A DNA stretch of 64,000 nucleotides from sequence record NC_070650.1. One strand, written 5' to 3'. Positions 745 to 60,245 of this stretch are shown piece by piece. The position numbers and the translations under genes were made by a program. Numbering within the stretch: position 1 is the first letter of the stretch; every line of letters starts with the position of its first letter. The notes beneath the pieces were generated by a model. It made no database searches. It saw only the letters and a program-made list of their open reading frames with translations, and was not told the DNA's origin.

Positions 745-796
745 ACGGCATAGGAGGAGGCGAAAGCCTCCTCCAGTTATGCTGTCTTTTTATTTT
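745..796. repeat. 52-bp repeat copy 1 / bidirectional terminator hairpin
   Basis: ACGGCATA-GGAGGAGGC-GAAA-GCCTCCTCC-AGTTATGCTGTCTTTTTATTTT; identical to 26113..26164 and 50/52 identical to 9278..9329; lies between convergent genes. Confidence 0.95.
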
Positions 797-1410
797 TTGC
801 GTTTAAACGCATAGGTGCCAATACCGTCGCGACCCAAATCAGTTTCAATGGTATTATACTCCACCAAATCAAAACCTTCGCCACCCATAAACCGAATAAG
901 GCCGGCATGAGTGAAATACCAGATATGTTCATCTTTGCGGTAATGGATGGATCTGGTGATGTGTTCTGCATCAGTAAAAATAGGGATGGATACGAATACC
1001 CAATCTGTTGCCTGGGCAAGCGCAACATCAGGTTCATCGATGTGCTCTAACGCATCCCAAAAGGTCAATGCACCAATAGGGGATTGATAGAAATCGTGAA
1101 ACTTATTCTGGTCAGCTAACCAGGCAATACCTGCTGGATTAACATCAAACCCAACGGCTCCTTCGCAGTTGTCTACGAATTGACCAGCTCCGATACCCAC
1201 ATCGCACACTGGACCGGACCAGTACTTCTTAACTAAATCCACCCGGGCTTTAGTTAGGGCGTCGCCCATCGGTGTAGCTGCGCGTTCACGATAGCGTGCG
1301 AAGTATTCTGCATCATAAGGGCGTGCATCTTTGGGTACCGGGTAATGTCCGATACCCAGCTCAGGAAAGAAAGAAAGTTCGGCGTTGAGTAACTCAGAGA
1401 CCTTGCGCAT
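790..1410 (-). CDS. class I SAM-dependent methyltransferase
   Basis: Motif I VCDVGIGAG, then GFDVNP and TFWDALEHI. Confidence 0.8.
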   Translation of the reverse strand: MRKVSELLNAELSFFPELGIGHYPVPKDARPYDAEYFARYRERAATPMGDALTKARVDLVKKYWSGPVCDVGIGAGQFVDNCEGAVGFDVNPAGIAWLADQNKFHDFYQSPIGALTFWDALEHIDEPDVALAQATDWVFVSIPIFTDAEHITRSIHYRKDEHIWYFTHAGLIRFMGGEGFDLVEYNTIETDLGRDGIGTYAFKRKK

Positions 1411-2284
1411 TTAACCACCCGTTAATTTTTCCAGTGACATTACTGATGTATTTGTTGCACGCATGCTTCATTTCATAACACATACAGTACTTGTCAGGAT
1501 AAACAAACAAGCAGTTGTGTAAGCTCATAATTCTCGGGTCGGTGATTTTAGTGTGATGGTTACACCCACCGTTACCACCCCCTAAGAAAATAGTGGGGCG
1601 GCGATAAGCGAAGGCGGCTTGAGATATTAAGCAAGGCCCGGTCACTACAATATCAGCACGTTCCACTAAGGCCATCAATTCCGTGATTGATAGCTCTCCT
1701 TTATGTATCTTTAAATGTGCGAATGGTTCCACATCCGGAATCCACTCTGCGCCAGGCTCTAAATCTGCCACGCTGATACAGAAATATCCCCGAGCCTGTA
1801 ATGCTTTGGAGACCTCATCGATATGTTTGTTTAACGGCCCTCTAGAAGCATTATGCCACTCTTTACGTTCGGTAGTCGGGCGTATCAGTGCAAGTTTCTT
1901 GATGTTGCCCGGAATGTATTTGTTGGGTAATTGAAAGTGAGGCATATCCAGTGCTACAGGCTCCACACCGAATTGGCGGCGACCGGCAGCGAACACAGAA
2001 CCATTCTCCAGATCTTTAATCCCATAAAAGATTTTCTTCGTGATAAGTTTCAGGTCACGGGGAACCTCTTCATATTTAACCTGCGTCCTGCTTTCATTTT
2101 TCTTTTGTGTACGCAGAGTAGTGTTCGCTCTAACAAAGTGAACATTAGGGATGTCCTGATAGAATTCTGGGATAGGAGTTTGAATCCAGACCTCATTGCC
2201 TGACATTACTAGCCGCTTAATAAATGGCCGCTGAAGTAGTTGATCGCCGATGCCCTGCATTCCATTGATTAGGTATCTTGCCAT
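1394..2284 (-). CDS. GT-B glycosyltransferase, GT9 (heptosyltransferase)-like
   Basis: N-terminal GIGDQLL motif, C-terminal LSITELMALVERADIVVT...PTIFLGG, Cys-rich tail. Confidence 0.72.
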   Translation of the reverse strand: MARYLINGMQGIGDQLLQRPFIKRLVMSGNEVWIQTPIPEFYQDIPNVHFVRANTTLRTQKKNESRTQVKYEEVPRDLKLITKKIFYGIKDLENGSVFAAGRRQFGVEPVALDMPHFQLPNKYIPGNIKKLALIRPTTERKEWHNASRGPLNKHIDEVSKALQARGYFCISVADLEPGAEWIPDVEPFAHLKIHKGELSITELMALVERADIVVTGPCLISQAAFAYRRPTIFLGGGNGGCNHHTKITDPRIMSLHNCLFVYPDKYCMCYEMKHACNKYISNVTGKINGWLNAQGL

Positions 2285-2302
2285 GGTAGTTACCCTCTAT
2301 TG

Positions 2303-2875
2303 TTATAATCGAATACTCGAGGACCATAACTCATCCTCTAATGTATTAGTTTTAAATGTTTTCAATTCCGTATATCGAGAACAGTTAATGACTGACATAG
2401 TTCCAATGATATCTGGGACTTGGTTAAAACAGCCATGCCATTTTTCGATATCGCTGTCTTTAGGATTCGAAAGGTCATCGATATGGGGTCCGTGCCAATG
2501 TAGCCCATTAGCCAGAGAACAATCATAACCCAATAACAATACTCTCTCAGCACCGAGATTGTGAGCCAAACAAATAGCGCGCATGCCTGAGTTGAATGGT
2601 CCTTTTGCGGGTATTGGCATGTACTGAATATCTGGGTAATCTTTTATTGTGGTTCTGATAGAAGTCCATTTCACCATCGTATTAGGTACCTCATCGTGAT
2701 ATTTGCGCCACCATGTTAAATCTCCGGCATAGATGTGGTCACAAGTAGGCACTTTACGCCAACTATTATTGACCGCGATAATCGGATAATTAGTTCGCAT
2801 GATGAGATGGCAGTCCTCATCAGTGAGTGATGGCCCTGAGGCTACACAAATGAACGTCTTTTTATCGAGTGGCAT
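2303..2875 (-). CDS. nucleotide-sugar transferase-like protein (Maf/MptE/sialyltransferase-like Rossmann fold)
   Basis: ICVASGPSL, IAVNN, NSG..AI.LA..LGA..VLLLGYD pattern. Confidence 0.6.
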   Translation of the reverse strand: MPLDKKTFICVASGPSLTDEDCHLIMRTNYPIIAVNNSWRKVPTCDHIYAGDLTWWRKYHDEVPNTMVKWTSIRTTIKDYPDIQYMPIPAKGPFNSGMRAICLAHNLGAERVLLLGYDCSLANGLHWHGPHIDDLSNPKDSDIEKWHGCFNQVPDIIGTMSVINCSRYTELKTFKTNTLEDELWSSSIRL

Positions 2876-2945
2876 GAGATAAGCCTTACAGTAGTGGACG
2901 TTAAAACCTATATCATTTTTCCATTAAACAAAACAAACATGGAAC

Positions 2946-2953
2946 TATATTAC
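2946..2953 (+). promoter_or_regulatory. phiKZ-type early promoter motif TATATTAC
   Basis: Exact match to the phiKZ early consensus in an AT-rich intergenic region upstream of a + run. Confidence 0.7.
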
Positions 2954-2993
2954 TGATTGGACGAATGTTGCGTATATTGGAGAGCATTTTATC

Positions 2994-3758
2994 ATGAGTA
3001 ATAACAACGTCATTCCTTTTACGGGTAAAAAATTAATGTCCAACTGTCCGGTTATGGTCATGGACTGTGAGACAACTGATCAGATGACTCGAGTATCTTT
3101 CAGTATGACCGCGATGCAATCTTCTTTACGACTACGACCGGCATCCTTGCAGACCGACGACTGGCTATCCACGATGTTCGGCTCAACCCCGACAGTCATG
3201 TCAGGCGTTCTCGATGTTCGTGTACGTAACCGATTTATTGATGCGTTTAAATGTGGCGGTTTGACGCTGTCTAGGTGGCTGAACGAGGTCCGATATCTCA
3301 GCCAGTTGCCGCTGTGTGATATCGTAGCGACCTACGACCACTACGAAGAATTCAATGGATGGGCCGATGTAGACCGACCAGCAATTCGATTTAATCTCGG
3401 TAAAGGGGTTTCCATCACTCAAGAGTCGTTCTTATTGGGTGAGGGGTCAGATTACCCGGAGACCGCCGTCGAGGACTATCGTAAGTCAAACGTAGGCTGT
3501 GTCGAGATTGATGAGATTTATGACCACTGCTCAGATGACGCCCTCAGGAAATTGACTGTCGAAGTTCAATTGGTGGAGCACTTAGCTGATTGTTTTTATC
3601 TGGATGCTTTAGCTTGGGGCGGTGGTTGGGAAGTAGAAATAACGGAGAAAGAAACTACATTCTGTTTCTTAGAGGCGGTAACCGCAAAACACATCAAACG
3701 TTGGGCGTTATCCATCAATAACGAGTATTATAGTGTTTTCTTAAATGGGGATATTTGA
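2994..3758 (+). CDS. hypothetical protein
   Basis: 254-aa ORF with GGAGAG SD. Confidence 0.75.
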   Translation: MSNNNVIPFTGKKLMSNCPVMVMDCETTDQMTRVSFSMTAMQSSLRLRPASLQTDDWLSTMFGSTPTVMSGVLDVRVRNRFIDAFKCGGLTLSRWLNEVRYLSQLPLCDIVATYDHYEEFNGWADVDRPAIRFNLGKGVSITQESFLLGEGSDYPETAVEDYRKSNVGCVEIDEIYDHCSDDALRKLTVEVQLVEHLADCFYLDALAWGGGWEVEITEKETTFCFLEAVTAKHIKRWALSINNEYYSVFLNGDI

Positions 3759-6976: not shown

Positions 6977-8176
6977 ATGAGGATTACAAATATGTCATAC
7001 CAAAGTTATTTTCTATCAGAAGCAAAACTCGCAGGCATATCTAAAGAGGACCAAGAGTTGGTCTTGAAGATGCTAAAGCCTATTTCGGATGAAGGACATT
7101 CTGGCGGCAGCATGAGCGTTTTTATCCAGTGGTTGGAGGACTGGGCCAATAACCCACAAACCATCACCGATAAGCGCAGTATGCTCTACCCGGTACAAGA
7201 ATCCGTGAAGGGTTTATCCTACGACGATTTGAAGCGGATCGCCGGATACGTTTATAAGACCTGCGCTTTTGAGCCGTTTACCCCACTTACCGGTAAAGAC
7301 GATGAGTGGATTGAATGCCATGATGGCTGGTACCAAAACCGTCGATTTAGTAAAGTATTTAAAGAAGGGAAGGACGGAATTCCGTATTGTCTTGACCGCG
7401 TAATTTGGTGCTATCCCTACAATGATTTCTCTGGATGGGGTGCGGTTACCCGTGGCGGTGGATGGAGTAGCGAGGACATCACGTTTCCGTATGACCCGGC
7501 GGCCCCAGAGAACGCAACAGAATATCGGTATTTCTTAGCCGACGATTGGCGTGAAGAACTCCCCGCAGAAATACCACCAAAAATCTGGCTGCAATGGCAA
7601 CGTCGCCGATATCATGCAGGCACTGACCTCGCCACTGGGAAGCTAAGACTGGACGTCATTTGCTTAGGTGAAACACAGCTTAATGAAGTAATCGTCGCAT
7701 ACGCCGCGGTTAAAACACATATTGAGACAACGGAAGGTCTGACGTTGGAACGTGCGATTCGTAAGCTCGGATGGGTGTGGGACTGTGATGATGAAACTTG
7801 GTTGAATTGTGGGCATACCATCGTAAAAACTGCTGACCTGGCACAAAAAGTCAGTTACCTATTAACGACTGAGCCGAAAGATACTACCGGGTATGCGGTA
7901 CAACAAACCACCATGTTACAACCAGGGAAATTCTATCAGCGATGGAAGCATTATCGCGATGATTACTTTGGGTGGATGAGGACTTCAGATAAACCCGAAC
8001 CCATCTATGTAGACAATGATAGAATGGTAACTGGCGACCACGATGACTATCTATGGCAACAACGCCGTAAATATGGTTATGCGCATCCTAAACGTAAAGG
8101 GGCGGTGCATGCTTCAGAGAACATAGTGGCGTGTGATGGCGAACAGCCACCGTTGGATGGTGCTGAGCCGGCATAA
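6977..8176 (+). CDS. conserved phage hypothetical protein
   Basis: 399 aa; contains FTPLTGKDDEW...YQNRRFSKVFK, a motif of a common phage family of unknown function. Confidence 0.75.
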   Translation: MRITNMSYQSYFLSEAKLAGISKEDQELVLKMLKPISDEGHSGGSMSVFIQWLEDWANNPQTITDKRSMLYPVQESVKGLSYDDLKRIAGYVYKTCAFEPFTPLTGKDDEWIECHDGWYQNRRFSKVFKEGKDGIPYCLDRVIWCYPYNDFSGWGAVTRGGGWSSEDITFPYDPAAPENATEYRYFLADDWREELPAEIPPKIWLQWQRRRYHAGTDLATGKLRLDVICLGETQLNEVIVAYAAVKTHIETTEGLTLERAIRKLGWVWDCDDETWLNCGHTIVKTADLAQKVSYLLTTEPKDTTGYAVQQTTMLQPGKFYQRWKHYRDDYFGWMRTSDKPEPIYVDNDRMVTGDHDDYLWQQRRKYGYAHPKRKGAVHASENIVACDGEQPPLDGAEPA

Positions 8177-8190: not shown

Positions 8191-8214
8191 GGGAGGGCAA
8201 ATGCCCTCCCTTTA
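8191..8214 (+). terminator. intrinsic terminator-like hairpin
   Basis: GGGAGGGC-AAAT-GCCCTCCC followed by TTT. Confidence 0.75.
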
Positions 8215-8233
8215 TATCCTGGAGATAACTATC

Positions 8234-8497
8234 ATGAATATTCGACAACGTCGTAAACGTATTGCCCGCTCACGTAAAGTCGGAGGGTTCGTACTGGACT
8301 TCGACGACGGCACCACATTACAGGTTCCCATCTTCGATTCGCGGATAGCCGAAGAAGGTTGTGATGTCGCCATCGCAAAAGCGGTTAAATCTGCGTTACT
8401 GCGGGATGCGCTACGTAAAGGCGCAACAGGCATTGTTGATGTCGAAGTGAACGTCCAAGGTAAGGACATCCAAATTGATTGGATAGGAGAAGTTTAA
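8234..8497 (+). CDS. hypothetical protein
   Basis: GGAG SD before ATG 8234; basic N-terminus. Confidence 0.7.
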   Translation: MNIRQRRKRIARSRKVGGFVLDFDDGTTLQVPIFDSRIAEEGCDVAIAKAVKSALLRDALRKGATGIVDVEVNVQGKDIQIDWIGEV

Positions 8498-9278: not shown

Positions 9279-9329
9279 CGGCATAGGAGGAGGCGTAAGC
9301 CTCCTCCAGTTATGTTGTCTTTTTATTTT
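9278..9329. repeat. 52-bp repeat copy 2 / bidirectional terminator
   Basis: Differs from copies 1 and 3 only at loop GTAA and TATGTTG. Confidence 0.95.
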
Positions 9330-10161: not shown

Positions 10162-10169
10162 TATATTAC
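10162..10169 (+). promoter_or_regulatory. early promoter motif TATATTAC
   Basis: Exact match, divergent from dam. Confidence 0.7.
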
Positions 10170-10216
10170 TTTGGTGAATGTACTATATACGATCCATCTA
10201 TTGAAGGTAAAATAAA

Positions 10217-13719: not shown

Positions 13720-13728
13720 CAACATAAC

Positions 13729-13758
13729 GAGTAGGGTTTCGGCCCTACTCATTTTTTT
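13729..13758 (+). terminator. intrinsic terminator
   Basis: GAGTAGGG-TTTCGG-CCCTACTC followed by a T run. Confidence 0.8.
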
Positions 13759-13776
13759 TAATTAAAGGTAAACCCA

Positions 13777-14331: not shown

Positions 14332-14354
14332 GGTGGGTGTATACCCACCTTTTT
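14332..14354 (+). terminator. intrinsic terminator
   Basis: GGTGGGT-GTAT-ACCCACC followed by TTTTT. Confidence 0.8.
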
Positions 14355-14373
14355 ATATCGTGGGGATAGAAAT

Positions 14374-17567: not shown

Positions 17568-17592
17568 AGGGAGGCTTCGGCCTCCCTTTTTT
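17568..17592 (+). terminator. intrinsic terminator
   Basis: AGGGAGGC-TTCG-GCCTCCCT followed by a T run. Confidence 0.85.
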
Positions 17593-18036
17593 ATGTTGTT
17601 ATGGGGGATTATGGTATCCTTAAGTAAAAGTATTATGGAGCTTACTGATGTATTTCAGGCCCACGCGTTGGAGGTGGTGGCATATACCCACGGCAGCGGC
17701 AGCGTTTCTCCGCCTATTGCACAAATAATCAATTTCGGATTATGTCATGTTTTTGCTAAACTTGTGTTATTGCGGCATCCGGAGGTCCGACTAGTAGGTA
17801 GTCCGACTCATGTTTTTTTGGAATTAGACGGTTTGTATTATGATTCGGCACACCCCGCAGGAATAGATAGCTTAACTAGATATCCTCTACCGTTATTGGA
17901 TTATTCCTCCACAAAAAAACTAACGTATGAATTCCCCGATTATATAACCGCCCTAGCTGCTGTTTCATGGTTGCTGCAAACTTCCTGGAAAGCGCAATAC
18001 ATTCAGTTATGTCGTGAAGTCCACATCACTAATTAG
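17593..18036 (+). CDS. hypothetical protein
   Basis: ORF between terminators; start uncertain; HVFLELDGLYYDS motif. Confidence 0.65.
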   Translation: MLLWGIMVSLSKSIMELTDVFQAHALEVVAYTHGSGSVSPPIAQIINFGLCHVFAKLVLLRHPEVRLVGSPTHVFLELDGLYYDSAHPAGIDSLTRYPLPLLDYSSTKKLTYEFPDYITALAAVSWLLQTSWKAQYIQLCREVHITN

Positions 18037-18044: not shown

Positions 18045-18080
18045 GGGGGGTATTACCCCCCCCCATATGCCGCTTTTTTT
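18045..18080 (+). terminator. terminator hairpin with TATGCCG
   Basis: G6-TATTA-C9, then ATATGCCGC and a T run. Confidence 0.65.
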
Positions 18081-18117
18081 ATTTTGCCAAAAACCACATA
18101 CTAAAAAAGCTCACACT

Positions 18118-18125
18118 TATATTAC
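18118..18125 (+). promoter_or_regulatory. early promoter motif TATATTAC
   Basis: Exact match upstream of ATG 18169. Confidence 0.7.
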
Positions 18126-18168
18126 TTTGGTGGTTAATGTGACCATCATCTTTCGTGAGGATTTTACT

Positions 18169-25397: not shown

Positions 25398-25428
25398 AGA
25401 GAGGGCAATTGCCCTCTCTTTTATGCAG
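25398..25428 (+). terminator. intrinsic terminator
   Basis: AGAGAGGGCA-AT-TGCCCTCTCT followed by TTTATGCAG. Confidence 0.8.
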
Positions 25429-26113: not shown

Positions 26114-26164
26114 CGGCATAGGAGGAGGCGAAAGCCTCCTCCAGTTATGCTGTCTTTTTATTTT
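26113..26164. repeat. 52-bp repeat copy 3 / bidirectional terminator
   Basis: Identical to 745..796. Confidence 0.95.
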
Positions 26165-27694: not shown

Positions 27695-27738
27695 ATCAAA
27701 TAAAATAATTATAAACCTATATCACTTGGATGAATAGG
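27695..27738 (+). promoter_or_regulatory. 44-bp duplicated promoter element (TATATCAC core), copy 1
   Basis: Identical to 34377..34420; AT-rich, upstream of a + run. Confidence 0.75.
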
Positions 27739-28206: not shown

Positions 28207-28234
28207 GGAGGGTGGGTAAAACCACCCTCCTTTA
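28207..28234 (+). terminator. terminator-like hairpin
   Basis: GGAGGGTGG-GTAAAA-CCACCCTCC followed by TTT. Confidence 0.7.
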
Positions 28235-29900: not shown

Positions 29901-29956
29901 ATGCGCTGCTCATTGATTTTATTTTTTGCCATAATAAGCAACGTAGGGGGTATACC

Positions 29957-31137: not shown

Positions 31138-31146
31138 TGACGAGTG

Positions 31147-31218
31147 GCTAGGTATTGGGTAATTCCGATACCTAGCTATTTATGCCGTCAACGGCATAAA
31201 GGGAGGCCGAAGCCTCCC
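31147..31218. terminator. back-to-back convergent terminators
   Basis: Hairpin 31147-31176, palindrome TTTATGCCGT-CA-ACGGCATAAA, hairpin GGGAGGC-CGAA-GCCTCCC. Confidence 0.8.
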
Positions 31219-34376: not shown

Positions 34377-34420
34377 ATCAAATAAAATAATTATAAACCT
34401 ATATCACTTGGATGAATAGG
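34377..34420 (+). promoter_or_regulatory. 44-bp duplicated promoter element, copy 2
   Basis: Identical to 27695..27738. Confidence 0.75.
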
Positions 34421-34948: not shown

Positions 34949-35401
34949 ATGAGGATTAAAGAAATGACACTGCAAGATAAAATGAACAAACTGTTTGCTG
35001 CCGGTTTTACTGTCACCACTGATGGGAAGAAAACAACGTTTACCAAAACGGTGGAAGGTGACTTAAATGATGCGATCGACAATCTTCTGAATATGGGTTT
35101 CGTACAAACGAATTCTCCAATCCATGAGGTGCTTTGGGATAATTATTGTTCAGCATTAGTACCTTGCATAAAACAGTTGTTTGGTAGCAAACACGAGACA
35201 GCGCCAACGTTCGAGTTTACTTGTAAGTTTGGGTGTTACGAGGTCCTCCGTAGAGGTGATTTGGTTTACCTAATAAATAAATTTCCTACTGCTTACGACA
35301 GTGAAAAGCAATTTGCCGAGGAACTACACAGAGTGTTACCGTCAGAGTACTATATTGCTGATATTATCAATAACACCCTCCGTATTGCACAGGCGGCATA
35401 A
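34949..35401 (+). CDS. hypothetical protein, same family
   Basis: NKLFAAGFTVT...GDLNDAI. Confidence 0.75.
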   Translation: MRIKEMTLQDKMNKLFAAGFTVTTDGKKTTFTKTVEGDLNDAIDNLLNMGFVQTNSPIHEVLWDNYCSALVPCIKQLFGSKHETAPTFEFTCKFGCYEVLRRGDLVYLINKFPTAYDSEKQFAEELHRVLPSEYYIADIINNTLRIAQAA

Positions 35402-35403: not shown

Positions 35404-35426
35404 GGGAGGGGCTAACCACCCCTCCC
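35404..35426 (+). terminator. terminator-like hairpin
   Basis: GGGAGGGG-CTAACCA-CCCCTCCC. Confidence 0.65.
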
Positions 35427-37830: not shown

Positions 37831-37860
37831 GGGTGGGTATGTACCCACCCTCTTATGCCA
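37831..37860 (+). terminator. terminator hairpin with TATGCC
   Basis: GGGTGGGTA-TG-TACCCACCC followed by TCTTATGCCA. Confidence 0.7.
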
Positions 37861-38516: not shown

Positions 38517-38554
38517 CGACCAGCGCTTTAATTTTTTATTTTTTGGAGCCTAAC

Positions 38555-40088: not shown

Positions 40089-40697
40089 ATGACTGACATC
40101 AGTAACCAATACAAACCTATGGGCGTGACTGTAATCAATCCACACACCGAGTATCGTTATTATGAGGTGGGTGGGTATCCACTAATGTTGGTTATGCGTG
40201 ACGGGATTGCCGTAGGGCAATTAGAATTTGATGTACTTCCCCCATTCGGGGAATATACGCGGGTGGTATTAGACCCTAGCGGTGAAGGGAACTTCACAAT
40301 CATGTTTATGTCGTGGATGCATCTTGATGAAGGTGCCCTGGATGAAGATGAGCTATGTGACGCTGAATTGCACTTCATGGATTTGCTGGGGTACCCTGAA
40401 GATGCACCAACACATGCTGGATATTTAGAATGGGCATTCAACTCACCCAGTGAAGCCATCATCTACGTCATTGAAAACCCTGATGACCCGGAATGTGTAG
40501 GCTCACTCATTATGAAGTATGAAGTTCAAAATACGGATACCCACATGTTCTATCAACCCGCTAAGAAGTGGATACCTTCATTCCTGATGGAAGTTAGGGC
40601 AACTAACACACTACGTGGGTGGTGTACTAATACTGCCAGTCAAATTCAAGATTTGGCCGTAATGCATTTTCCGGGTAGTGGGGAAACCATTCACTAA
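40089..40697 (+). CDS. hypothetical acidic protein
   Basis: AGGAG SD, 202 aa. Confidence 0.75.
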   Translation: MTDISNQYKPMGVTVINPHTEYRYYEVGGYPLMLVMRDGIAVGQLEFDVLPPFGEYTRVVLDPSGEGNFTIMFMSWMHLDEGALDEDELCDAELHFMDLLGYPEDAPTHAGYLEWAFNSPSEAIIYVIENPDDPECVGSLIMKYEVQNTDTHMFYQPAKKWIPSFLMEVRATNTLRGWCTNTASQIQDLAVMHFPGSGETIH

Positions 40698-40801
40698 ATC
40701 AGGCAGGCCGCGGGATATAACTGTGTGTAACGGATCTAAATGGGTAAACCTATAACGTGATTGTTTCTATGAAAAATGCGTTATGTCTTTTCTCAATTCT
40801 G

Positions 40802-40825
40802 AGGAGGGCTCTTGCCCTCCTTTTA
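40802..40825 (+). terminator. terminator
   Basis: AGGAGGGC-TCTT-GCCCTCCT followed by TTT. Confidence 0.75.
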
Positions 40826-41037
40826 ATTTGTCTTCCTTAAGTCATAAAAAAATACTTCGCTTATATATAGAGTGAGCTGCTATGCAAGCGAACGATAAAG
40901 ACCCTTAGAAATAAGGCCGTTATCCGAAAACACCCATAGGGTTTTCGGGGGAAAGGGGGTTTCGTAGATTGGAAGGGGAGAAGGATTGTCAAGGAAGAGG
41001 GGAAACTTTAAAAAAATAGCCTGAGAGGTAGAAGGTC

Positions 41038-41304
41038 ATGTATCTTGAATTAATCGCATCCGAAGACAAATGGGGGTATCTCAAAGGGTTATTCCCAGCC
41101 GCGGTATTATCACCAGACCAACGAGCGATGCTCTATACTGATTCCAAAAGGTTCATTTTCGATATAAGTCACGGTTATGTCGAAAACGCTTATCTATGCA
41201 TACCCGACGCGGAACTAAGTAGTGTTATCGAAAAAATCCCCGAAGTTAAAAAAACAATAATGGGTGTGGATGATTTATGCGTTATTAACGTTATTACTAG
41301 TTGA
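41038..41304 (+). CDS. hypothetical protein
   Basis: 88-aa ORF with GAAGG SD. Confidence 0.6.
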   Translation: MYLELIASEDKWGYLKGLFPAAVLSPDQRAMLYTDSKRFIFDISHGYVENAYLCIPDAELSSVIEKIPEVKKTIMGVDDLCVINVITS

Positions 41305-41323
41305 TGTTTTATCGCATAAAAAA

Positions 41324-41358
41324 GAGGGAGGCCCCAAAGCCTCCCTCGATATGCCGGC
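41324..41358. terminator. bidirectional terminator
   Basis: GAGGGAGGC-CCCAAA-GCCTCCCTC, flanked by GCATA and TATGCCG. Confidence 0.8.
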
Positions 41359-42200: not shown

Positions 42201-42293
42201 AGAAGCCTCCTGGCGTTGGTAAAAAAATTACGTGGTAAAGTGACAGTATGTCGTTGTACCACATTTTAACTAGACTATTAGGGACCACTACAA

Positions 42294-43265: not shown

Positions 43266-43283
43266 AACGCAACATAAACCACA

Positions 43284-43316
43284 GGGAGAGGCTATTAGCC
43301 TCTCCCCATATGCCGC
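43284..43316 (+). terminator. terminator with TATGCCG
   Basis: GGGAGAGGCT-ATT-AGCCTCTCCC followed by CATATGCCGC. Confidence 0.8.
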
Positions 43317-43414: not shown

Positions 43415-43422
43415 TATATTAC
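43415..43422 (+). promoter_or_regulatory. early promoter motif TATATTAC
   Basis: Exact match upstream of the 43460 gene run. Confidence 0.7.
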
Positions 43423-43459
43423 TACATTGACTACCAGCCACAAATTCCTGGAGTACGTA

Positions 43460-48405: not shown

Positions 48406-48434
48406 GCCTCTCCTTCGGGAGAGGCTCTTTTTTT
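48406..48434 (+). terminator. intrinsic terminator
   Basis: GCCTCTCC-TTCG-GGAGAGGC followed by a T run. Confidence 0.85.
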
Positions 48435-48502
48435 CGCCTTTTTATTTTTTTACTTCGGACGTACATCGTGTACTAGATAACAAAAATATAGGATTGTAAA
48501 CC

Positions 48503-50737: not shown

Positions 50738-50792
50738 CGGCATAGATGGAGAGGCTTTTTCGGCCTCTCCATCTTAGGGGGCTTTATGCCGC
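50737..50792. terminator. bidirectional terminator with CGGCATA/TATGCCG flanks
   Basis: ACGGCAT-AGATGGAGAGGC-TTTTTCG-GCCTCTCCATCT...TTTATGCCGC. Confidence 0.85.
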
Positions 50793-51869
50793 GGAAAAAT
50801 ACGGTGAGATATGCTCCAACAAATCTTGGTTAACATACCCTGAATCATCTCCACGAATACCAGTAAGTAATCGTTCTTGACTAATCCGTTTTAGTGCAAT
50901 CTGAATATCTACTTCAGCATGTTTGTTGGCTACATGCCCGGTACTCATGTCAAGGACCAATAGCGTTTCCAATAATGGAATTTCGGCAAATGTCGTTACC
51001 CATTTATCTTGGGTAGTGGGAAGAACCCCAGTCAGTACCGTTTTTCTAACGTTCTGAGAAAACACTTGCGGGAATGTGTCCAGTAATCCAGAAAAACTTC
51101 TAGGTTTGACTGTGGCCCAATCCACGTAAGTGGAAATAACTTTATCTACGAACGTATATGGAGTAGCTAAATTGACGATTTGTTTCTTTTGGATGGGTAA
51201 GGTATCGATACCCACAACTTGCTTTCGTACTAAATTAATAAGTGCAACGTCACACTGAGACGGAAGCATGCCTGGAAGTACGTACTGATAAATAAAGTTA
51301 GCTGGAGTCCCTCGCATCCCTTCAGGGCGCTGTAATTGCTCACGTAACCACATCCGGTACATCAAACCTAACACCGGGACGTCGATACTGAATACAGCAT
51401 ATCCGGTAGAGTATCCGTGGTTATCCGGGAGATGTAAGTCTAGTGAAGTATAATCGTTACGAATAACTTTCACTGGGGATTGTGTTTTCCAATCCAGACT
51501 TAATCTATTCGGATCTACGAATGACTCAACGGCAATGTAGGCCTCTTTGGATGAACGCCCATAAAAACTTCCAGTGGGTGGAATATAGCCTCGGTTCGTC
51601 GGTGTGGTAATGCCTACGGCCCGGCAGGCAGCATCGTAACGATCGGTAATTAAATCATAATAAACAGATGCTGGATGATACCACCCATCGGATAGGTTAT
51701 CCAACAATTTAATTAGAATGTGTCTGCTATCTACCCAACCGCCTGATTGTTGATAATATTCCCGCATGCGCACGAAGTTGTTATTCAATCTTTCTTTTAT
51801 ATATCGCATAGGGGTTAGGGTGGGTCCGCCCACCTGTGGGCCTTGTACCGCCAAGACGTCCGTAAACAT
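50784..51869 (-). CDS. conserved chimallivirus virion protein (phiKZ gp52-like)
   Basis: Reverse gene between polymerase and chimallin; call rests on synteny. Confidence 0.6.
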   Translation of the reverse strand: MFTDVLAVQGPQVGGPTLTPMRYIKERLNNNFVRMREYYQQSGGWVDSRHILIKLLDNLSDGWYHPASVYYDLITDRYDAACRAVGITTPTNRGYIPPTGSFYGRSSKEAYIAVESFVDPNRLSLDWKTQSPVKVIRNDYTSLDLHLPDNHGYSTGYAVFSIDVPVLGLMYRMWLREQLQRPEGMRGTPANFIYQYVLPGMLPSQCDVALINLVRKQVVGIDTLPIQKKQIVNLATPYTFVDKVISTYVDWATVKPRSFSGLLDTFPQVFSQNVRKTVLTGVLPTTQDKWVTTFAEIPLLETLLVLDMSTGHVANKHAEVDIQIALKRISQERLLTGIRGDDSGYVNQDLLEHISPYFSAA

Positions 51870-52107
51870 GGGTCGGCTCCAATTAATGTAAAAAAATACA
51901 CGGTTATACATATACTGTAGAGGAAGTACCAACGACCTCTACGATTCCACACGGAGTCGGAAAGGGTTGTGATGTCGTTTGGTTATCTTGGCACTGGTAC
52001 GGGCTAAACCAATCCAAAATAATTAAACACCTATATCATTTTTACGCATATCTATCGTGATGACAAAACGCATTCCAAAAAACCGTGATTGTAAATTTAC
52101 ATAAACG

Positions 52108-52115
52108 TATATTAC
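52108..52115 (+). promoter_or_regulatory. early promoter motif TATATTAC for chimallin
   Basis: Exact match 130 bp upstream of chmA. Confidence 0.75.
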
Positions 52116-52244
52116 TTAGGTGATGGGAGTGCAGTAGATTTTCTACAGCTCATCCGAACATTGTGTTCCAAACCGTCAATGGCGTCTTGGCCCGACGCAG
52201 ACCAACATTGACTTTATCTACTCCTTATAAGGGAAAATTAAACT

Positions 52245-54131
52245 ATGAGTATTAACGACGCTCGCAATCCTGGTAACAACGACGCTGCTCAAGAACGTGC
52301 TCACACTGCGGCGCCGCAGTTTGATGAGTCTCAAGTGCGCCAGGCTGCTCCGCATCGCAAAACCATTACCGGTAAAGGCGGTGTGAACGCACTCCTGTCC
52401 CGTCGTCTCAACCGCGTAGGCGGTAACGAAGACATCAGCAAAATCGCTGAAATGATGCGCGGCTATCTGCGCAGCCAACTGGATGAGGGCTATGTTCCGA
52501 CTTTCGTCATTGTTGACGGCGCTACTTACGAACTGGCGGTATCCGCCATCGTCCCGACCGTGCTGCTGACCGTGCGTGGTGTTAAAACGGTGCTGGCTTA
52601 TCCGATTCTCGTCGAGCCGCGCGATCGCTCCATGGACACTGTCCGTACCGTCCGTGAAAACAACCGCGAACTGTCTCTGCCGGTAGTGACCTCCGATTTC
52701 TACGACGCACGTACTGAAGCACAGATCCGTAACGCCATCGCTCGTCAGTTCAGCCTGAACCCGGCCGATAGCGACATCAAACTGGTCGGTTATTGCACCC
52801 TGCCGGTTGAAGTATCTTCCGACGACAAATCCGAAATCGAAGACCTGGCCGCCAACGTATTCTCGGCGCTGGAATCCTGGGTTCGTGAACAACCAGGTTC
52901 TGAAGAACCGCGTTTCAACCTGGCAGAAATCGACAATACCCAAACTCGCTTCACCGGCAAACTGGACTTCTCTCCGGCGCCGATCAAAACTCTGACTGGC
53001 CTGCCGATCCGTAACGACGTGACCATCACCACCAAAATGCGTGATATCACGGTCGACAGTCTGCACAGCCAATCCGGCGTTCTGTCCGAAGTGAGCGGTT
53101 ATGTGGACCTGATCTATGTCGACCCGCAACCCGAACAACATCCGTACACCCGCCAGATGTATCTGAACCCGGCGTGCTACCTCCCGAACTTCGTGATTTC
53201 CCATCAGGAAATTCTGGTTAACGCCGTGACTCCGGAACTGGTTCTGTTCGGCCTGGCATCTGCACGCCTGATGCAGCAGCCGAACAACGCATTCTACAAT
53301 GCGTTCAAACCACGCCACGGCGTCAAAAACGATACCCGTGATATCGGGGCTATCGGTTACGAGTTCGATCCGACTGGCGAAGGCAAAGGCCTCAAAGCAC
53401 CTATCGATACCGCAGACTCCACTTTCAACCTGCAGACTCTTCTGAGCACTGCATTCCGCCCGGGCATGCTGTATAGCCTGGATGTGGTAGATGGTGGTGA
53501 GTATTCCTGGGTATACGAGGCGCTGGTGTATGCTGCGAATGGCGATGCCGCCGCAGAAAACGATGTAATTCAGTATGCAGATAACCTGACCAACGGCCAT
53601 TTCCGTGCGCTGTGGAACCCGGTTGAAAACCGCGTTGCGGTAGATTCCGGCGACCTGATTCCGATCGGTTATTACATCGATCCGGAAGGCCAACGTAAAG
53701 ACCTGCGTGACATCGACTATCTGGCGCTGCTGAACATGTTCGGTGGTAGTGACATGGACCTGGTTTATCGCTGGTCTGAAACCTTCGGTAATGCAAGTCA
53801 ATCTCCGCAGCAACGTCTGGATGCACGTGTACGTATCCTGAAATCGCTGCTGAACAACAACCTGTTCATCAAACGTATCGCCCATCGCATCACCCTGACC
53901 CCGGCGTTCATCGACGTGCTGGCTACCGCTATCTCCAAAGCGGGCATCACGATCGTTCCGGAAACCGTGTTCAGCGAACAGCAGACCTATACCCGTGGGT
54001 CTACTACCCTGGCTAACTACGCGCTTACTGGCGGCCAGTCCCCGCTGTTCGCGGGTACCCAGCAGCCGTCCGTAGCCGGTTACAGTTCTGTATACCAGCC
54101 GCGTGGCGCAGGCGGCCGTTTCGGCGGTTAA
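52245..54131 (+). CDS. chmA: chimallin, phage nucleus shell protein
   Basis: 628 aa; LLSRRL, PIRNDVTIT, SGYVDLIY, GEYSW, IPIGYY...GQRKDLRDID motifs; directly upstream of nvRNAP beta'. Confidence 0.92.
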   Translation: MSINDARNPGNNDAAQERAHTAAPQFDESQVRQAAPHRKTITGKGGVNALLSRRLNRVGGNEDISKIAEMMRGYLRSQLDEGYVPTFVIVDGATYELAVSAIVPTVLLTVRGVKTVLAYPILVEPRDRSMDTVRTVRENNRELSLPVVTSDFYDARTEAQIRNAIARQFSLNPADSDIKLVGYCTLPVEVSSDDKSEIEDLAANVFSALESWVREQPGSEEPRFNLAEIDNTQTRFTGKLDFSPAPIKTLTGLPIRNDVTITTKMRDITVDSLHSQSGVLSEVSGYVDLIYVDPQPEQHPYTRQMYLNPACYLPNFVISHQEILVNAVTPELVLFGLASARLMQQPNNAFYNAFKPRHGVKNDTRDIGAIGYEFDPTGEGKGLKAPIDTADSTFNLQTLLSTAFRPGMLYSLDVVDGGEYSWVYEALVYAANGDAAAENDVIQYADNLTNGHFRALWNPVENRVAVDSGDLIPIGYYIDPEGQRKDLRDIDYLALLNMFGGSDMDLVYRWSETFGNASQSPQQRLDARVRILKSLLNNNLFIKRIAHRITLTPAFIDVLATAISKAGITIVPETVFSEQQTYTRGSTTLANYALTGGQSPLFAGTQQPSVAGYSSVYQPRGAGGRFGG

Positions 54132-54151
54132 GTCTGAAGTAACGTCATAAT

Positions 54152-54181
54152 AGCGGGAGGGGTAAAACCCTCCCGCTTTAT
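54152..54181 (+). terminator. intrinsic terminator
   Basis: AGCGGGAGGG-GTAAAA-CCCTCCCGCT. Confidence 0.8.
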
Positions 54182-54224
54182 TTCCCACAGCTTCTTTTTT
54201 TAGTTAAGCAAACAAAGGGTAATC

Positions 54225-56441: not shown

Positions 56442-56453
56442 TGGTGTGTCTGG

Positions 56454-56521: not shown

Positions 56522-56923
56522 ATGGCTAAAACAATACCTGTCCCTAGTTTATCCGTAGATGGTTGGATTATAACCCCTACTAAAAAAGTAGATAAATTGT
56601 TATGTTATTATTTTTTATCTGAGCCATCACAAAGTCAACTATACACTGTGATCTCACTACCCTCAGAAATTGCAAAGAAAGGAAACTGGCCGAATCAACT
56701 TAAAGAGTTGGTTAGCAACGATTTACAAACCTTTTTTAGTGCCTATTTCACAGAAGGCGTAAGTGTATATGTTGAAATAAAAGACACTGATGATAATGGA
56801 AACCAAATATCACAATACAAAATTTATAGTCAAGTTATCGTCACCATTGCTGGACAAAAATATTCTGTGGCAAAAATGGCTACAGTATTAAATTCTCAGA
56901 TTGTTAATCTCGCAGATGCATAG
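56522..56923 (+). CDS. conserved chimallivirus hypothetical protein
   Basis: PVPSLSVDGW, YFLSEPSQS. Confidence 0.75.
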   Translation: MAKTIPVPSLSVDGWIITPTKKVDKLLCYYFLSEPSQSQLYTVISLPSEIAKKGNWPNQLKELVSNDLQTFFSAYFTEGVSVYVEIKDTDDNGNQISQYKIYSQVIVTIAGQKYSVAKMATVLNSQIVNLADA

Positions 56924-56934
56924 AGGTAATCAAA

Positions 56935-57528: not shown

Positions 57529-58642
57529 TACAACAATAGCTTCATTTCACGATGTTCATTTTGGGCATCCAAATACGCGCTATGATAACATTATTCGTGG
57601 GATGGAAAAAGACATTTGTGCATCAGATCCGTTTATTCGTAACCTGACCTATTTGTTTTATCCTGGCGATGTTTTTGACCGGTTATTAATTTTACCGGAA
57701 CAGGGAATCCCGGCGATCCGCCGGGAGTTCAGACGCCAACTAGAAATATGTCAAGCTTACGGTATTTCTGTTCGTGTATTAGAAGGTACCCCGTCCCACG
57801 ACTGGCATCAATCTAAATTGATATTAAGTGTCGCTGAAGAAATGGGGTTTACTGGTGATTTAAAGTACGTCGATACTTTGTGTGTCGAAATCACGCCCAA
57901 AGGCCACAGCATTTTGTATGTTCCTGACGAGTGGCGTACCGATCTCCAACAAACCTATCTGGAAGCCCTGGAGGCGATTAAAGCTGCTGGATTAGAACAG
58001 GTGGATTATTGTTTATTCCACGGTCAATTTACCCATCAGTTTCCTCCGGAGTGGCAGGTAGGGTGCCATGATGTCGATGCCTGGCAGTTATTGGTAAAGC
58101 ATTATCTTTTTGCAGGGCATATCCACACACCATCTAAAAAAGGAAAGATTATTGTTGCGGGGTCCTATGACCGACTGCGACATGGTGAGGAACACCCAAA
58201 AGGACATTACCGGGTAACGGTAAAAAGGGATGGGGATGACGTTATTGAATTTATTGAGAATAAAGAGGCAAAAACTTATTTGACTCTTGATGTCAGTGGA
58301 CAAAGCGTCGAATCCATTTATGGTTATGTTGAATCGAAAATACATGGGCTTCCGGTTAATTCTTTTATTCGGATAAGCGGCAATCGAGACCAAAGTCTAA
58401 GAATGGTCAAGAAGGCACTTACTGATAATTATCCCGAATATAGATGGGATATTATGTTTGAAAAAACAAAAAAGCAACCGAAAACAGTAAGTCTAGATTC
58501 CACACCCATACAAAAAACTACTGTGACCCTAGGGGCGTTAGAAGATGCAATCCTGCAACGTTTAGAACAATCTGGCCTGTCTCCTAATGTGATAGACCAC
58601 GCCAAACAACTATATAAGGACAGCAAACATGAGTTTGCGTGA
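57509..58642 (+). CDS. SbcD/Mre11-like metallophosphoesterase nuclease
   Basis: DVH, GDVFD, GTPSHD, HGQF, GHIH motifs. Confidence 0.85.
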   Translation: MSTTNSDTTIASFHDVHFGHPNTRYDNIIRGMEKDICASDPFIRNLTYLFYPGDVFDRLLILPEQGIPAIRREFRRQLEICQAYGISVRVLEGTPSHDWHQSKLILSVAEEMGFTGDLKYVDTLCVEITPKGHSILYVPDEWRTDLQQTYLEALEAIKAAGLEQVDYCLFHGQFTHQFPPEWQVGCHDVDAWQLLVKHYLFAGHIHTPSKKGKIIVAGSYDRLRHGEEHPKGHYRVTVKRDGDDVIEFIENKEAKTYLTLDVSGQSVESIYGYVESKIHGLPVNSFIRISGNRDQSLRMVKKALTDNYPEYRWDIMFEKTKKQPKTVSLDSTPIQKTTVTLGALEDAILQRLEQSGLSPNVIDHAKQLYKDSKHEFA

Positions 58643-59447
58643 TTTTTCTTTACGGGAGATGGGTGCAATACCCATCTCCATTGGGACGAGCTTGGCTATA
58701 GAAGCATTACGTCAACCCAACGTACCCAACTACGACGCACTCTGGGTAAATTTAAGAACGCTGTTTCGCAATCTAATGTCATGTGTTCCTACTCATGTCC
58801 GTGACGGTGCCAACGATAGAGATGTATCTACCGTACTCGAAGAAGAGATGGGGCATATCGCTGAAGCAGTAGCTATACTCAGTAATGGCACCAAAGCCGT
58901 TAAGTGGTACATGAGTAAACCAGAAACGTTGGTCAAAATACTGCCCGATGCCATTATAAGGGCACCCAAAACAAATCTACAAAAGTCTCAGGCCGCCTTA
59001 TGCGATGCTGCGTTAGGTAGGCTGATTGCAAAATATCAGAAAGATATTCAGGTATTTTCTCCGATTATGTATGGGCAAGGGAAAGCCATGGTACTTACTC
59101 ATTTCCCCGAAGACCTGTTGAGTCGCAAGCATTTCTCTGAAATGTATTTATTAGAGTCCCACACAGGTAAAATAAAAGGACATGATGAATTCAATACAAA
59201 ACTCGGAGATATCGATCAATACCCTAAACTCCCATTTAATGGATTTACGCTAACAATATTTGGTGATAAGCAAGTATTGATTTATCAGATGCCAAATAAA
59301 ATCAGGACCATGGTGTTAGAGGCAGCTAAGAAAGCTGGCTGGACCCCAATGACCACCAAGGATAGAATGTTGTTAACGTTAAACACCATAAAAAATCAGT
59401 ACGACCGTGAAGTACTTAAAAGTATTTTAATGAAATGCAAGTATTGA
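58629..59447 (+). CDS. conserved chimallivirus protein (possibly FEN/PIN-like)
   Basis: PISIGTSLA, WVNLRTLFRN; core-block synteny. Confidence 0.6.
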   Translation: MSLRDFSLREMGAIPISIGTSLAIEALRQPNVPNYDALWVNLRTLFRNLMSCVPTHVRDGANDRDVSTVLEEEMGHIAEAVAILSNGTKAVKWYMSKPETLVKILPDAIIRAPKTNLQKSQAALCDAALGRLIAKYQKDIQVFSPIMYGQGKAMVLTHFPEDLLSRKHFSEMYLLESHTGKIKGHDEFNTKLGDIDQYPKLPFNGFTLTIFGDKQVLIYQMPNKIRTMVLEAAKKAGWTPMTTKDRMLLTLNTIKNQYDREVLKSILMKCKY

Positions 59448-59509
59448 TTTTTTACCGTAGATAACCATCATTTGTACTGTTATCACTATAACTAAGGAAT
59501 CACACCACC

Positions 59510-60205
59510 ATGGCCGACCAACCAATTAAACGTCAAACGTACCTCGATGACCTGCGAGCTAAGCTGTTCGCTAAGCCACTGCAGGGAGGTACTAAACGTC
59601 CTATTCTGACTTTTGGTTATGTTACTCGGAAGTACGATACCAACTGCGCAGAAATCAAAATCAAAACTAACGTCCCGAACGATGCAGATAACGGGCAGAT
59701 TAAAGTGGTCGTACCCATGCCGGATCTGTTTGGTTATTTCCGGGCAATCCAAAACATGGCGACCCAGTCCGGGAAACAGGAACGTAGTTTCCGGGTGTAT
59801 TCTACCTTCGCAAAAGGCGGTAAAGTAGATCCGTATCCGTCGGCCATGATTCACCTGGGCAAAGAAGACGACGGTCGCATGTATATTGCGGTGACTAAAA
59901 AGAATCGGCCGAACATTAAGTTCTACATGTGCCCGGACGAAATGTATCGCCTGGTTGTAAATGGCGAAGAAATGACCACCGAACAAACTTACGCCGAATA
60001 CGCGCTGGGTTATATTGACATGATTCGCGGTATTTATCGGACCATCATGGACCATGATTACGTGCCGTGGGAAAACCCGCATAACAACGGCGGTGGCAGT
60101 CAACGCGGCAATGGTGGAAATGGCGGTAACTGGAATGGGGGTGGTAACTCCAATTCGGGTGGCAGTCAATCAAACAACAGTTACGATGATGATGTTTGGG
60201 GTTGA
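59510..60205 (+). CDS. chmC: ChmC-like nucleus-associated RNA-binding protein
   Basis: Immediately upstream of the gp68-like gene; beta-rich core plus Gly/Asn low-complexity tail ending YDDDVWG. Confidence 0.72.
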   Translation: MADQPIKRQTYLDDLRAKLFAKPLQGGTKRPILTFGYVTRKYDTNCAEIKIKTNVPNDADNGQIKVVVPMPDLFGYFRAIQNMATQSGKQERSFRVYSTFAKGGKVDPYPSAMIHLGKEDDGRMYIAVTKKNRPNIKFYMCPDEMYRLVVNGEEMTTEQTYAEYALGYIDMIRGIYRTIMDHDYVPWENPHNNGGGSQRGNGGNGGNWNGGGNSNSGGSQSNNSYDDDVWG

Positions 60206-60215
60206 CGTCATATAC

Positions 60216-60245
60216 GGGAGGGCTTTTGCCCTCCCTTTATGCCGT
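60216..60245 (+). terminator. terminator with TATGCCG
   Basis: GGGAGGGC-TTTT-GCCCTCCC followed by TTTATGCCGT. Confidence 0.8.

Follow-up and report, generated by a model that had tools for sequence, protein, structure and literature searches.

The first 64,000 nucleotides (nt) of the genome of Klebsiella jumbo phage vB_KvM-Eowyn (hereafter Eowyn; LR881104.1/NC_070650.1; 265 kb, 45% GC), referred to below as the window (nt 1–64000), carry a recurrent module in which a GC-rich hairpin is followed, usually after 2–3 nt, by the box (T)TTATGYYGT, often on both strands. These elements are probably factor-independent chimallivirus terminators, often bidirectional, built from a GC hairpin and a 3′ box that reads (U)UUAUGYYGU in RNA. 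Terminators of this kind have already been described for phages phiKZ and 201phi2-1, and Eowyn adds a member. Judging from the experiments in those two phages, RNA 3′ ends would fall at the Eowyn boxes, and the fixed AUGYYGU is probably read by the phage polymerases or by a conserved phage factor, because it persists in genera that otherwise have unrelated intergenic sequences. We establish here the anatomy of the module, its enrichment, its placement relative to genes, the purifying selection acting on it, and its presence in several chimallivirus genera.

The Eowyn annotation includes the nuclear shell protein chimallin (gp088, 52245–54131), the tubulin PhuZ (gp073), and RpoBC (gp089), with further RNA polymerase (RNAP) subunits annotated downstream; Eowyn is thus a nucleus-forming jumbo phage with its own multisubunit RNAPs. 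An 8-kb stretch taken from the window is 100% identical to the Eowyn record at the same coordinates. Only two close relatives were found at the DNA level, KpHz_2 (98%) and KpGz_1 (~85%). The Eowyn chimallin is only ~23–27% identical to those of RAY, LucasX, PhiPA3, and Goslar, which makes Eowyn a deep branch of the group. A tblastn search with chimallin gave matches in 127 phage records, many of which are nucleus-forming jumbo phages.

An earlier note on this DNA, made from the sequence alone, had reported hairpins followed by TATG-N-Y-G. All the sites it listed are present, and the pattern lies far above background: TATGYYG occurs 59 times on the two strands of the window, against 36.6 ± 5.7 in dinucleotide shuffles, none of which (0/100) reached 59. 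A search for perfect hairpins (stem of at least 7 base pairs (bp), at least 5 G-C pairs, loop of 3–8 nt) found 30 in the window. The zone from −2 to 15 nt 3′ of their edges makes up 0.84% of positions per strand, yet it holds 18 of the 59 copies, where ~0.5 would be expected; the hairpin-linked copies therefore account for the whole excess of TATGYYG over chance. The same was found across 264 kb of the genome, where 57 of 240 copies lie no more than 15 nt 3′ of one of 108 hairpins (1.6 expected), with 2 or 3 nt between the stem end and the T of TATG in 41 of the 57. On its own, the pattern TTATKYYGT shows no significant excess in the window (10 copies vs. 6.7 ± 2.7); the signal is therefore the coupling to hairpins. 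An alternative hairpin caller based on RNAfold (36-nt windows, −11 kcal/mol) was dropped, as it over-calls at 45–50% GC, absorbs the box into the stem, and under-counts.

The box also emerges when no motif is assumed. Among 14-nt 3′ flanks of intergenic hairpins, TATG is the top 4-mer, present in 76 of 156 flanks vs. 6.1 expected, and the leading 6-mers are TTATGC, TTTATG, and TATGCC. Aligning 81 flanks on TAT[G/A] gave T at −1 in 52, G in 70, Y in 77, the second Y in 70, G in 64, and the final T in 47, with TATATCG as a minor form beside (T)TTATGYYGT. The core of the motif proposed earlier is thus real, but the unit is longer, T(−1)TATGYYGT, and has a TATATCG variant.

Eowyn stems are 7–12 bp long, with loops mostly of 4 nt. 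Contrary to the first description, most stems are related: they share a 5′ arm rich in purines and a 3′ arm rich in pyrimidines and make up a single GGGAGG(G)C...G(C)CCTCCC-type family (e.g., GGGAGGGC/GCCCTCCC and GGAGGAGGC/GCCTCCTCC). The 5′ arms resemble Shine-Dalgarno sequences (GGAGG, GGGAGG) and the 3′ arms the anti-Shine-Dalgarno sequence. A GNRA or UUCG loop is present on one strand in 31 of 52 four-nt loops, which suggests that a folded nucleic acid, RNA being the simplest case, is under selection. The observation that many of these hairpins lack a U-tract is half true: most sites have 2–4 T before the ATG, and true T-runs are in the minority (13752, 48427), but the box itself is U-rich (UUUAUGYYGU) and a displaced T5AT6 run follows at some sites. 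Rfam, at the gathering score, returned no matches in the window.

The placement of the module is that of a terminator. Using annotated minus-strand genes and the longest plus-strand open reading frames (ORFs), a gene map that is approximate for 64–264 kb, we counted 267 co-directional junctions on the plus strand (++), 25 convergent, 25 divergent, and 11 co-directional on the minus strand (−−). The 108 hairpins are distributed as 51 at ++ junctions, 24 convergent, one divergent, two at −− junctions, and 30 intragenic. If one departure from the box is tolerated, 21 of the 24 hairpins at convergent junctions have it (on both strands in 12, on the plus strand only in four, on the minus strand only in five). 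At ++ junctions, the box is found on the sense strand only in 14, on both strands in 12, on the antisense strand only in five, and is missing in 20, while 26 of the 30 intragenic hairpins have none. Hairpin and box occur together at one of 25 divergent junctions. Hairpins begin a median of 10.5 nt after the stop codon, and the next ORF lies at widely varying distances, as far as 299 nt away; between hairpins and annotated genes in the window, the distances are 3–27 nt on the upstream side and 24–206 nt on the downstream side. Thus, the module follows stop codons, fills convergent junctions, and is nearly absent from divergent ones, which is the placement of a terminator and not of a promoter. 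It lies downstream of genes and forms bidirectional pairs between convergent genes, as phiKZ terminators do, and is anchored to upstream stop codons, unlike late promoters, which would lie upstream of late genes, including in divergent regions. The sole divergent hairpin with a box (genome ~136443–136480) is in a 301-nt region between gp163 and gp164, ~100 nt downstream of the early-promoter-like CCCTATTACTT; it could mark a small non-coding RNA.

Published transcript ends in relatives connect this anatomy to termination. ONT-cappable-seq of phiKZ identified a terminator motif, 5′-BCCYCCCCHWWDGGGRRGGBYTTATKYYGT-3′ (a stem-loop and then a TTAT region), in 61 terminators and thus in most of its intrinsic ones, as well as six bidirectional terminator regions (Putzeys et al. 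2024, microLife; PMC10914365). A very similar motif A was reported in 59 terminators of 201phi2-1, together with a second motif that lengthens the hairpin; eight 201phi2-1 terminators were put in an in vivo terminator-trap reporter, and several were functional according to the authors (PMC11512511). Our hairpin search, repeated on phiKZ 100–150 kb, returned hairpins followed by TTTATGYYGT, often on both strands. We took start sites and 3′ ends with coordinates for phiKZ from the bioRxiv supplement of Putzeys et al. and placed 21 published 3′ ends in the same 50 kb. Box-bearing terminators account for six of them (T046, T051, T057, T059, T060, and T065), and in all six the 3′ end lies 5–8 nt after the stem, −1 to +2 nt from the G of TATG. 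The start sites lie elsewhere. None of the 119 start sites P008–P126 falls on a hairpin-adjacent box (judged by eye, and for the 13 in 100–150 kb also by coordinate). Several are found 20–40 nt downstream of a box (early P017, P028, and P099; late P054), and the late start sites P049 and P075 use a second TATG 5–10 nt downstream of a terminator hairpin. In phiKZ, then, RNA 3′ ends coincide with the box, and transcription starts from separate elements, often a short way downstream. A sequence-specific termination signal, one of the two readings offered by the earlier note, is supported by the match to the phiKZ consensus, the position after stop codons, the convergent placement, and the phiKZ 3′ ends at the G of the box.

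The module extends to other genera. As a cross-phage measure, the 32 nt that precede each TATGYYG were scored for folding energy against the genome background, and copies with a top-1% upstream hairpin were counted: 60/240 in Eowyn (p = 4e-64), 11/40 in phiKZ, 7/35 in Goslar, 9/25 in RAY, 8/11 in LucasX, and 1/3 in RSL2, of which 18 kb was sampled. The same module is seen in RAY and LucasX, and annotated Goslar terminators are followed by TTTTATGCCGT; a perfect-stem search in Goslar was dropped, since it misses the mismatched stems of its terminators, which were read from the annotation instead. A sample of phage AR9, which has its own RNAPs and a different late promoter, gave 0/13, and a sample of T4, which uses the host polymerase, gave 1/16, i.e., no coupling. 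The coupling thus characterizes several chimallivirus genera that infect different hosts, rather than hairpin terminators at large.

The elements of the window are as follows, with coordinates on the 64,000-nt stretch and 'rc' denoting a box on the minus strand.
746–798, gp002(+)/gp003(−): two-sided cassette with rc-box 746–752, hairpin 753–774, box 778–784, and a T5AT6 run 787–798; an outer pairing of ACGGCATA with TATGCTGT carries the stem up to the U-run (−31.3 kcal/mol).
8191–8210, after gp014: hairpin with a TATATCC variant in the plus flank (8213–8219).
8169–8175(−): weak rc TATGCCG, 15 nt from that hairpin, overlapping the last codons and the stop codon of gp014.
9279–9329, gp016(+)/gp017(−): second two-sided cassette, with rc-box 9279–9285, hairpin 9286–9307, box 9311–9317, and a T-run 9320–9329.
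13729–13750 (element 13720–13759), after gp020: hairpin with a plain T8 run on the plus side and TTATGTTGT at 13720–13726 on the minus side.
14332–14349(+), after gp021: hairpin with a TATATCG variant box at 14354–14360.
17568–17587(+), element to 17599, after gp027: UUCG-loop hairpin followed by TTTTTATGTTGT, box 17592–17598.
18045–18061(+), after gp028: hairpin with box 18066–18072 and a T7AT4 run 18074–18085; an early-promoter-like box follows at 18118–18126.
25398–25419(+), element to 25428, after gp041: hairpin with a degenerate box, TATGCAG, at 25422.
26114–26164, gp042(+)/gp043(−): third two-sided cassette, with rc-box 26114–26120, box 26146–26152, and a T-run 26155–26164.
28207–28230(+), element to 28239, after gp047: hairpin with a TATATCG variant box.
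~31143–31180 and 31201–31218, gp054(+)/gp055(−): two hairpins with facing boxes at 31181–31187(+) and 31192–31198(−).
35404–35426, after gp059: hairpin with rc-box 35394–35400, which holds the gp059 stop codon, and GGTTTTACG in the plus flank.
37831–37850(+), element to 37860, after gp064: hairpin with TATGCCA at 37854.
41324–41347, gp071(+)/gp072(−): hairpin with box 41350–41356(+) and a degenerate rc-box, TATGCGA, at 41312–41318.
43284–43306, after PhuZ gp073: hairpin with box 43309–43315(+) and rc TATGTTG 43270–43276 at 7 nt.
50744–50774, gp086(+)/gp087(−): long hairpin with rc-box 50738–50744, which overlaps the stem by 1 nt, and a plus box 50785–50791 at 10 nt.
54152–54177 (element 54143–54190), after chimallin gp088: hairpin with TTATTTCC, the K = T form of the phiKZ consensus, in the plus flank and rc TATGACG at 54143.
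60216–60235, after gp095: hairpin with box TTTATGCCGT at 60237–60245(+) and rc TATGACG at 60206–60212.
48406–48451(+), for comparison: plain terminator with no box, consisting of hairpin 48406–48425, a T7 run, and then a T5AT7 run.

An exact TATGYYG lies 0–4 nt from a strong hairpin in the cassettes at 746, 9279, and 26114 (both strands) and at 13720(−), 17592, 18066, 31181/31192, 35394(−), 41350, 43309, and 60238–60244(+); the exact copy at 50738(−) overlaps its stem by 1 nt. Of the sites listed earlier, those at 8169, 43270, and 50785 are weak, and those at 25422, 37854, 41312, 54143, and 60206 deviate from TATGYYG. Three side observations concern individual entries. The annotated start of gp015 (8201) is an ATG in the loop of hairpin 8191–8210, and an ATG at ~8233 with GGAG upstream (8201–8235) seems a more plausible start. 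The facing boxes at 31179–31200 form a perfect palindrome with 9-bp arms, TTTATGCCG-N4-CGGCATAAA, itself called as a hairpin and also present at genome ~191440–191462. The three near-identical 55-bp cassettes (746, 9279, and 26114) face the minus-strand genes of a methyltransferase (gp003), a Dam methylase (gp017), and gp043; in each case, the complement of the cassette T-run contains the final Lys codons of the gene and its TAA stop.

A comparison with KpGz_1, which aligns to Eowyn 1–88 kb at 79–91% identity, demonstrates purifying selection on the module. Over 27 orthologous elements, identity is 74.6% in loops, 88.7% in flanks, 94.3% in stems, and 92.2% at box positions. Over 24 boxes, no difference was seen at any of the 96 positions that make up the leading TATG (TATA in variants), and at the two Y positions seven of ten changes are C/T exchanges. 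In the element at 13729, TATGTTG in the minus-strand box is replaced by TATGCCG (TT to CC) in KpGz_1, and at 37831 TATGCCA becomes TATGCTG, each with compensatory stem changes; at 37831 and 43284, the stem or box is altered with the consensus retained. The hairpin at 18045 is largely rebuilt around an unchanged TTTATGCCGT. The off-register copy at 43270, 7 nt from its stem, is not conserved (G to A), which fits a non-functional copy. Antisense-strand boxes at ++ junctions are conserved as well, e.g., 13720 and 35394.

Measured against known systems, the module is closest to the phiKZ and 201phi2-1 motif: a GC stem-loop with polypurine/polypyrimidine arms, directly followed by (Y)TTATKYYGT. As in phiKZ, it is intergenic, found at convergent junctions, and arranged in bidirectional pairs, and both phages have their own multisubunit RNAPs. 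The two differ in polarity, the G-rich arm being 5′ and the C-rich arm 3′ in Eowyn, whereas the phiKZ consensus has CCYCCCC 5′ and GGGRRGG 3′; RAY and LucasX use both polarities. At the K position, G predominates in Eowyn (70/81), and the TATATCG variant occurs. The host of Eowyn is Klebsiella, its genome is 45% GC, and its module is known from sequence, that of phiKZ also from mapped transcripts. With canonical rho-independent terminators the module shares a GC hairpin, a U-rich stretch, and a predicted release 6–8 nt after the stem, as well as, in bidirectional examples, A/T-rich flanks that permit action on both strands; plain rho-independent versions occur among the Eowyn sites at 13729(+) and 48406. 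In contrast to the canonical type, the Eowyn U-run ends after 2–4 U at a fixed AUGYYGU, which is conserved among phage genera that infect different hosts and was not seen in the T4 sample. The class II termination/pause signal of T7 RNAP is a conserved short DNA sequence and does not depend on RNA structure alone. This is an analogy only (cf., in part, bioRxiv 10.64898/2026.02.12.705533), since the T7 signal needs no hairpin, differs in sequence, and acts on a single-subunit polymerase.

We envisage the following mechanism. A hairpin with a purine 5′ arm, a pyrimidine 3′ arm, and often a GNRA or UUCG tetraloop would fold in the nascent transcript; the first residues of the box, rich in U and A (UUUAU), would provide a weak RNA:DNA hybrid; and the transcript would be released ~6–8 nt after the stem, at or 1–2 nt past the G of the box. 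A box on both sides would stop polymerases arriving from either direction, an arrangement that would suit convergent genes and block stray antisense transcripts. Where both boxes are present, ACRRCAUA could pair with UAUGYYGU and lengthen the stem as far as the following U-run.

Several points weigh against reading the module as a terminator of this kind. The U-run next to the stem is short (2–4 U), and its efficiency with the phage polymerases is a prediction. The 3′ ends obtained by ONT-cappable-seq do not separate termination from processing and carry an uncertainty of about ±2 nt, and the junction counts inherit the approximations of the gene map. At ++ junctions, 17 hairpins carry an antisense-strand box with no gene to terminate there, so antisense transcription must be assumed; the simplest reading is that these boxes would insulate against it, and such transcription is plausible because the promoter core of the phage polymerase is just four bases. 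Finally, Vibrio phage vB_VmeM-Yong MS32, which encodes chimallin, showed no coupling (0/19) in the 31 kb around that gene. The module is therefore not universal in the family, and this lineage may have different terminators or a different polymerase specificity.

Pairing between boxes bears on a first alternative, in which the module is an RNA processing or stability element. Here, paired boxes would form a 17–18 bp stem that is cut by a double-strand-specific or phage RNase or protects the 3′ end against exonucleases, and sequence would be conserved for pairing or cleavage. There is indeed a subclass of two-sided sites in which both boxes pair (ACGGCAUA with UAUGYUGU, including G-U pairs; −27 to −31 kcal/mol). 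It comprises five sites, marked by the T-runs at 787, 9320, and 26155 in the window and at genome 72435 and 117048, in which the extended stem of 17–18 bp contains an internal loop (an RNase III-type stem would be ~20 bp of near-continuous duplex) and ends 0–2 nt before the T5AT6 run, itself 12 nt after the inner hairpin. The second 201phi2-1 motif likewise elongates the terminator hairpin (PMC11512511), Eowyn encodes a ribonuclease (gp168), and the 3′-end mapping is compatible with processing. We nevertheless consider this explanation improbable. About half of the elements are one-sided and lack the extended stem; two-sided sites often have A-C mismatches on the sense strand (43284, 60216, and 172067), pairing beyond CAUA/UAUG is not consistently kept, and the spacer never pairs. 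In KpGz_1, the minus-strand box at 13720–13726 changes from TT to CC though the plus side has no pairing box, and in 201phi2-1 several of the eight terminators cloned in the in vivo trap were confirmed (PMC11512511). For the same reasons (one-sided sites, frequent A-C mismatches), stem extension by pairing was rejected as a general cause of two-sidedness.

A further observation concerns the T-runs. A second box, T(3–7)-A-T(4–7), lies 11–16 nt (mode 12) after hairpins, on the plus strand only, with 17 occurrences genome-wide vs. ~1 expected. It abuts an extended stem at some sites; others are those at 18074, 38532, and 48439. The plus-strand sites in the window are as follows.
787–798
9320–9329
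18074–18085
26155–26164
29917–29927
38532–38544
48439–48451

The second alternative, also raised by the earlier note, is that these are hairpin-coupled late promoters: terminator–promoter cassettes in which the G of the box is +1 for the phage non-virion RNAP (nvRNAP), with minus-strand copies giving antisense RNA. Hairpin-dependent promoters have a precedent in the N4 virion RNAP, a single-subunit enzyme whose promoters are DNA hairpins with a 5–7 bp stem and a 3-nt loop upstream of early genes. The Eowyn module differs, with stems of 7–12 bp, loops mostly of 4 nt, and a position downstream of genes. The note was correct that TATG is the core of the phiKZ late promoter: G is +1, the core is necessary for transcription, each TATG substitution strongly reduces activity, and no conservation is seen downstream of TATG (PMC4666361). 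The module shares these four bases, and the 3′ end of a phiKZ terminator lies where the start site would be. Moreover, candidate promoters of Eowyn structural genes also have TATG followed by C or T, phiKZ P049 and P075 start just downstream of a terminator hairpin, and sense-strand boxes leave space for a short 5′ untranslated region and a ribosome-binding site (e.g., 17592–17613). Against this, the hairpin-adjacent boxes of phiKZ coincide with 3′ ends and with none of its 119 start sites, the module is the rule at convergent junctions and present at one of 25 divergent ones, and its anchor is the upstream stop codon, not the downstream start codon. The conserved YYGT is foreign to phiKZ late promoters, and TATA variants occur although TATG substitutions are so damaging to phiKZ promoters. 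The GC-rich stem would occupy −5 to −25, where DNA must melt, and no hairpin accompanies the classic phiKZ late promoter P119L (P063), whose sequence is TATGTAGA. Taken together, a promoter role for the module is quite improbable, and with it the proposed antisense RNA.

Sequences resembling each phiKZ promoter class are found elsewhere in Eowyn. The 25 divergent regions contain a recurrent A-rich stretch followed by CTATATTACT, like the early promoters listed for phiKZ. The early-like box, (A-rich ~12 nt)-C-TATAT[T/C]A[C/T]T, has 17 strict matches genome-wide, 16 on the plus strand; they are mostly intergenic and upstream of gene blocks, including those of chimallin and RNAP. The early (virion RNAP)-promoter-like boxes of the window are almost only on the plus strand, as follows.
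2909–2917
2946–2954
10162–10170
18118–18126
27718–27726
34400–34408
43415–43423
52032–52040
52108–52116
60325–60333

The phiKZ middle-promoter element is AAanTTACc (PMC4666361). The divergent regions of Eowyn also contain a middle-like AAAAATTAC followed ~16–20 nt on by TATG; one such arrangement (with TATGTCG) precedes the PhuZ gene at 42223–42253, and a similar arrangement is found at genome 75037–75125. Candidate late promoters of the structural genes have TATG with neither hairpin nor YYGT. We also looked for early- and late-class terminators, but the first hairpins after early-like boxes are heterogeneous (TATATCG, T-runs, TATGTTG), and no conclusion was drawn. Two long non-coding stretches were seen: 40697–41038 (340 nt) holds a hairpin with no box (40802–40821), and 51869–52245 (375 nt) holds two early-promoter-like boxes upstream of the chimallin gene.

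The overlap between the terminator box and the late-promoter core raises the possibility of a common reader. In a 2026 structure of phiKZ nvRNAP on an open P119L analogue, T(−3)A(−2)T(−1)G(+1) of the non-template strand is held by the β-like subunit GP123, in a pocket that lies beneath the β-lobe (PMC12809450). The Eowyn homologue of GP123 is gp145 (genome 112940–114565, outside the window), with 33% overall identity; it keeps 10 of the 14 named TATG-pocket side chains, and Tyr406 is replaced by Trp. This conservation counts in favor of the late-promoter explanation just weighed. At the G of a terminator, an elongating enzyme has the same four bases in the same register, and capture in the pocket could therefore pause it. 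We tentatively suggest, while regarding it as unlikely, that one DNA-reading pocket might serve both start and stop, with TATG capture pausing the polymerase where the hairpin releases the transcript. Against this idea, the TATG pocket is incomplete in the transcribing complex (PMC12809450).

The third alternative is a DNA-level element, i.e., a repeated palindrome that binds a dimeric phage protein, a cruciform, or a short mobile repeat, not directly involved in transcription. The near-identical 55-bp copies at 746–798, 9279–9329, and 26114–26164 and the roughly ten copies of the GGGAGGGC subfamily genome-wide are in its favor, and GCGAAAGC-type loops are very stable as DNA hairpins too. This explanation is highly improbable: similarity among the three copies stops at the cassette edges, the copies occupy orthologous positions in KpGz_1, hence no recent movement, one-sided boxes are common, stems vary by compensatory changes around a fixed box, and placement tracks gene ends and orientation. 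A mobile element was rejected on the first two grounds.

Reading the Eowyn elements as phage terminators has consequences for the group. As far as the searched literature shows, the module is new for Eowyn and for enterobacterial and Xanthomonas chimalliviruses, as are the reversed polarity of the arms, the extent of two-sidedness, and the exact register between 3′ ends and a promoter-type TATG. The box offers a sequence-based marker of transcription-unit ends in chimallivirus genomes for which there are no RNA data, with the caution that not every TATG is a late promoter, and the short bidirectional cassettes could act as insulators in jumbo-phage engineering. Phages that infect Pseudomonas, Klebsiella, Erwinia, Escherichia, and Xanthomonas share the 9-nt box although their chimallins are only ~25% identical. 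This breadth, together with its absence from the T4 and AR9 samples, argues for recognition of the box by the phage polymerases or a conserved phage factor, beyond its effect as a weak hybrid. If the shared pocket were true, the box would be a polymerase-specific stop codeword common to chimallivirus genera. On that view, promoter-type DNA recognition may also drive termination in these unusual sigma-less polymerases.

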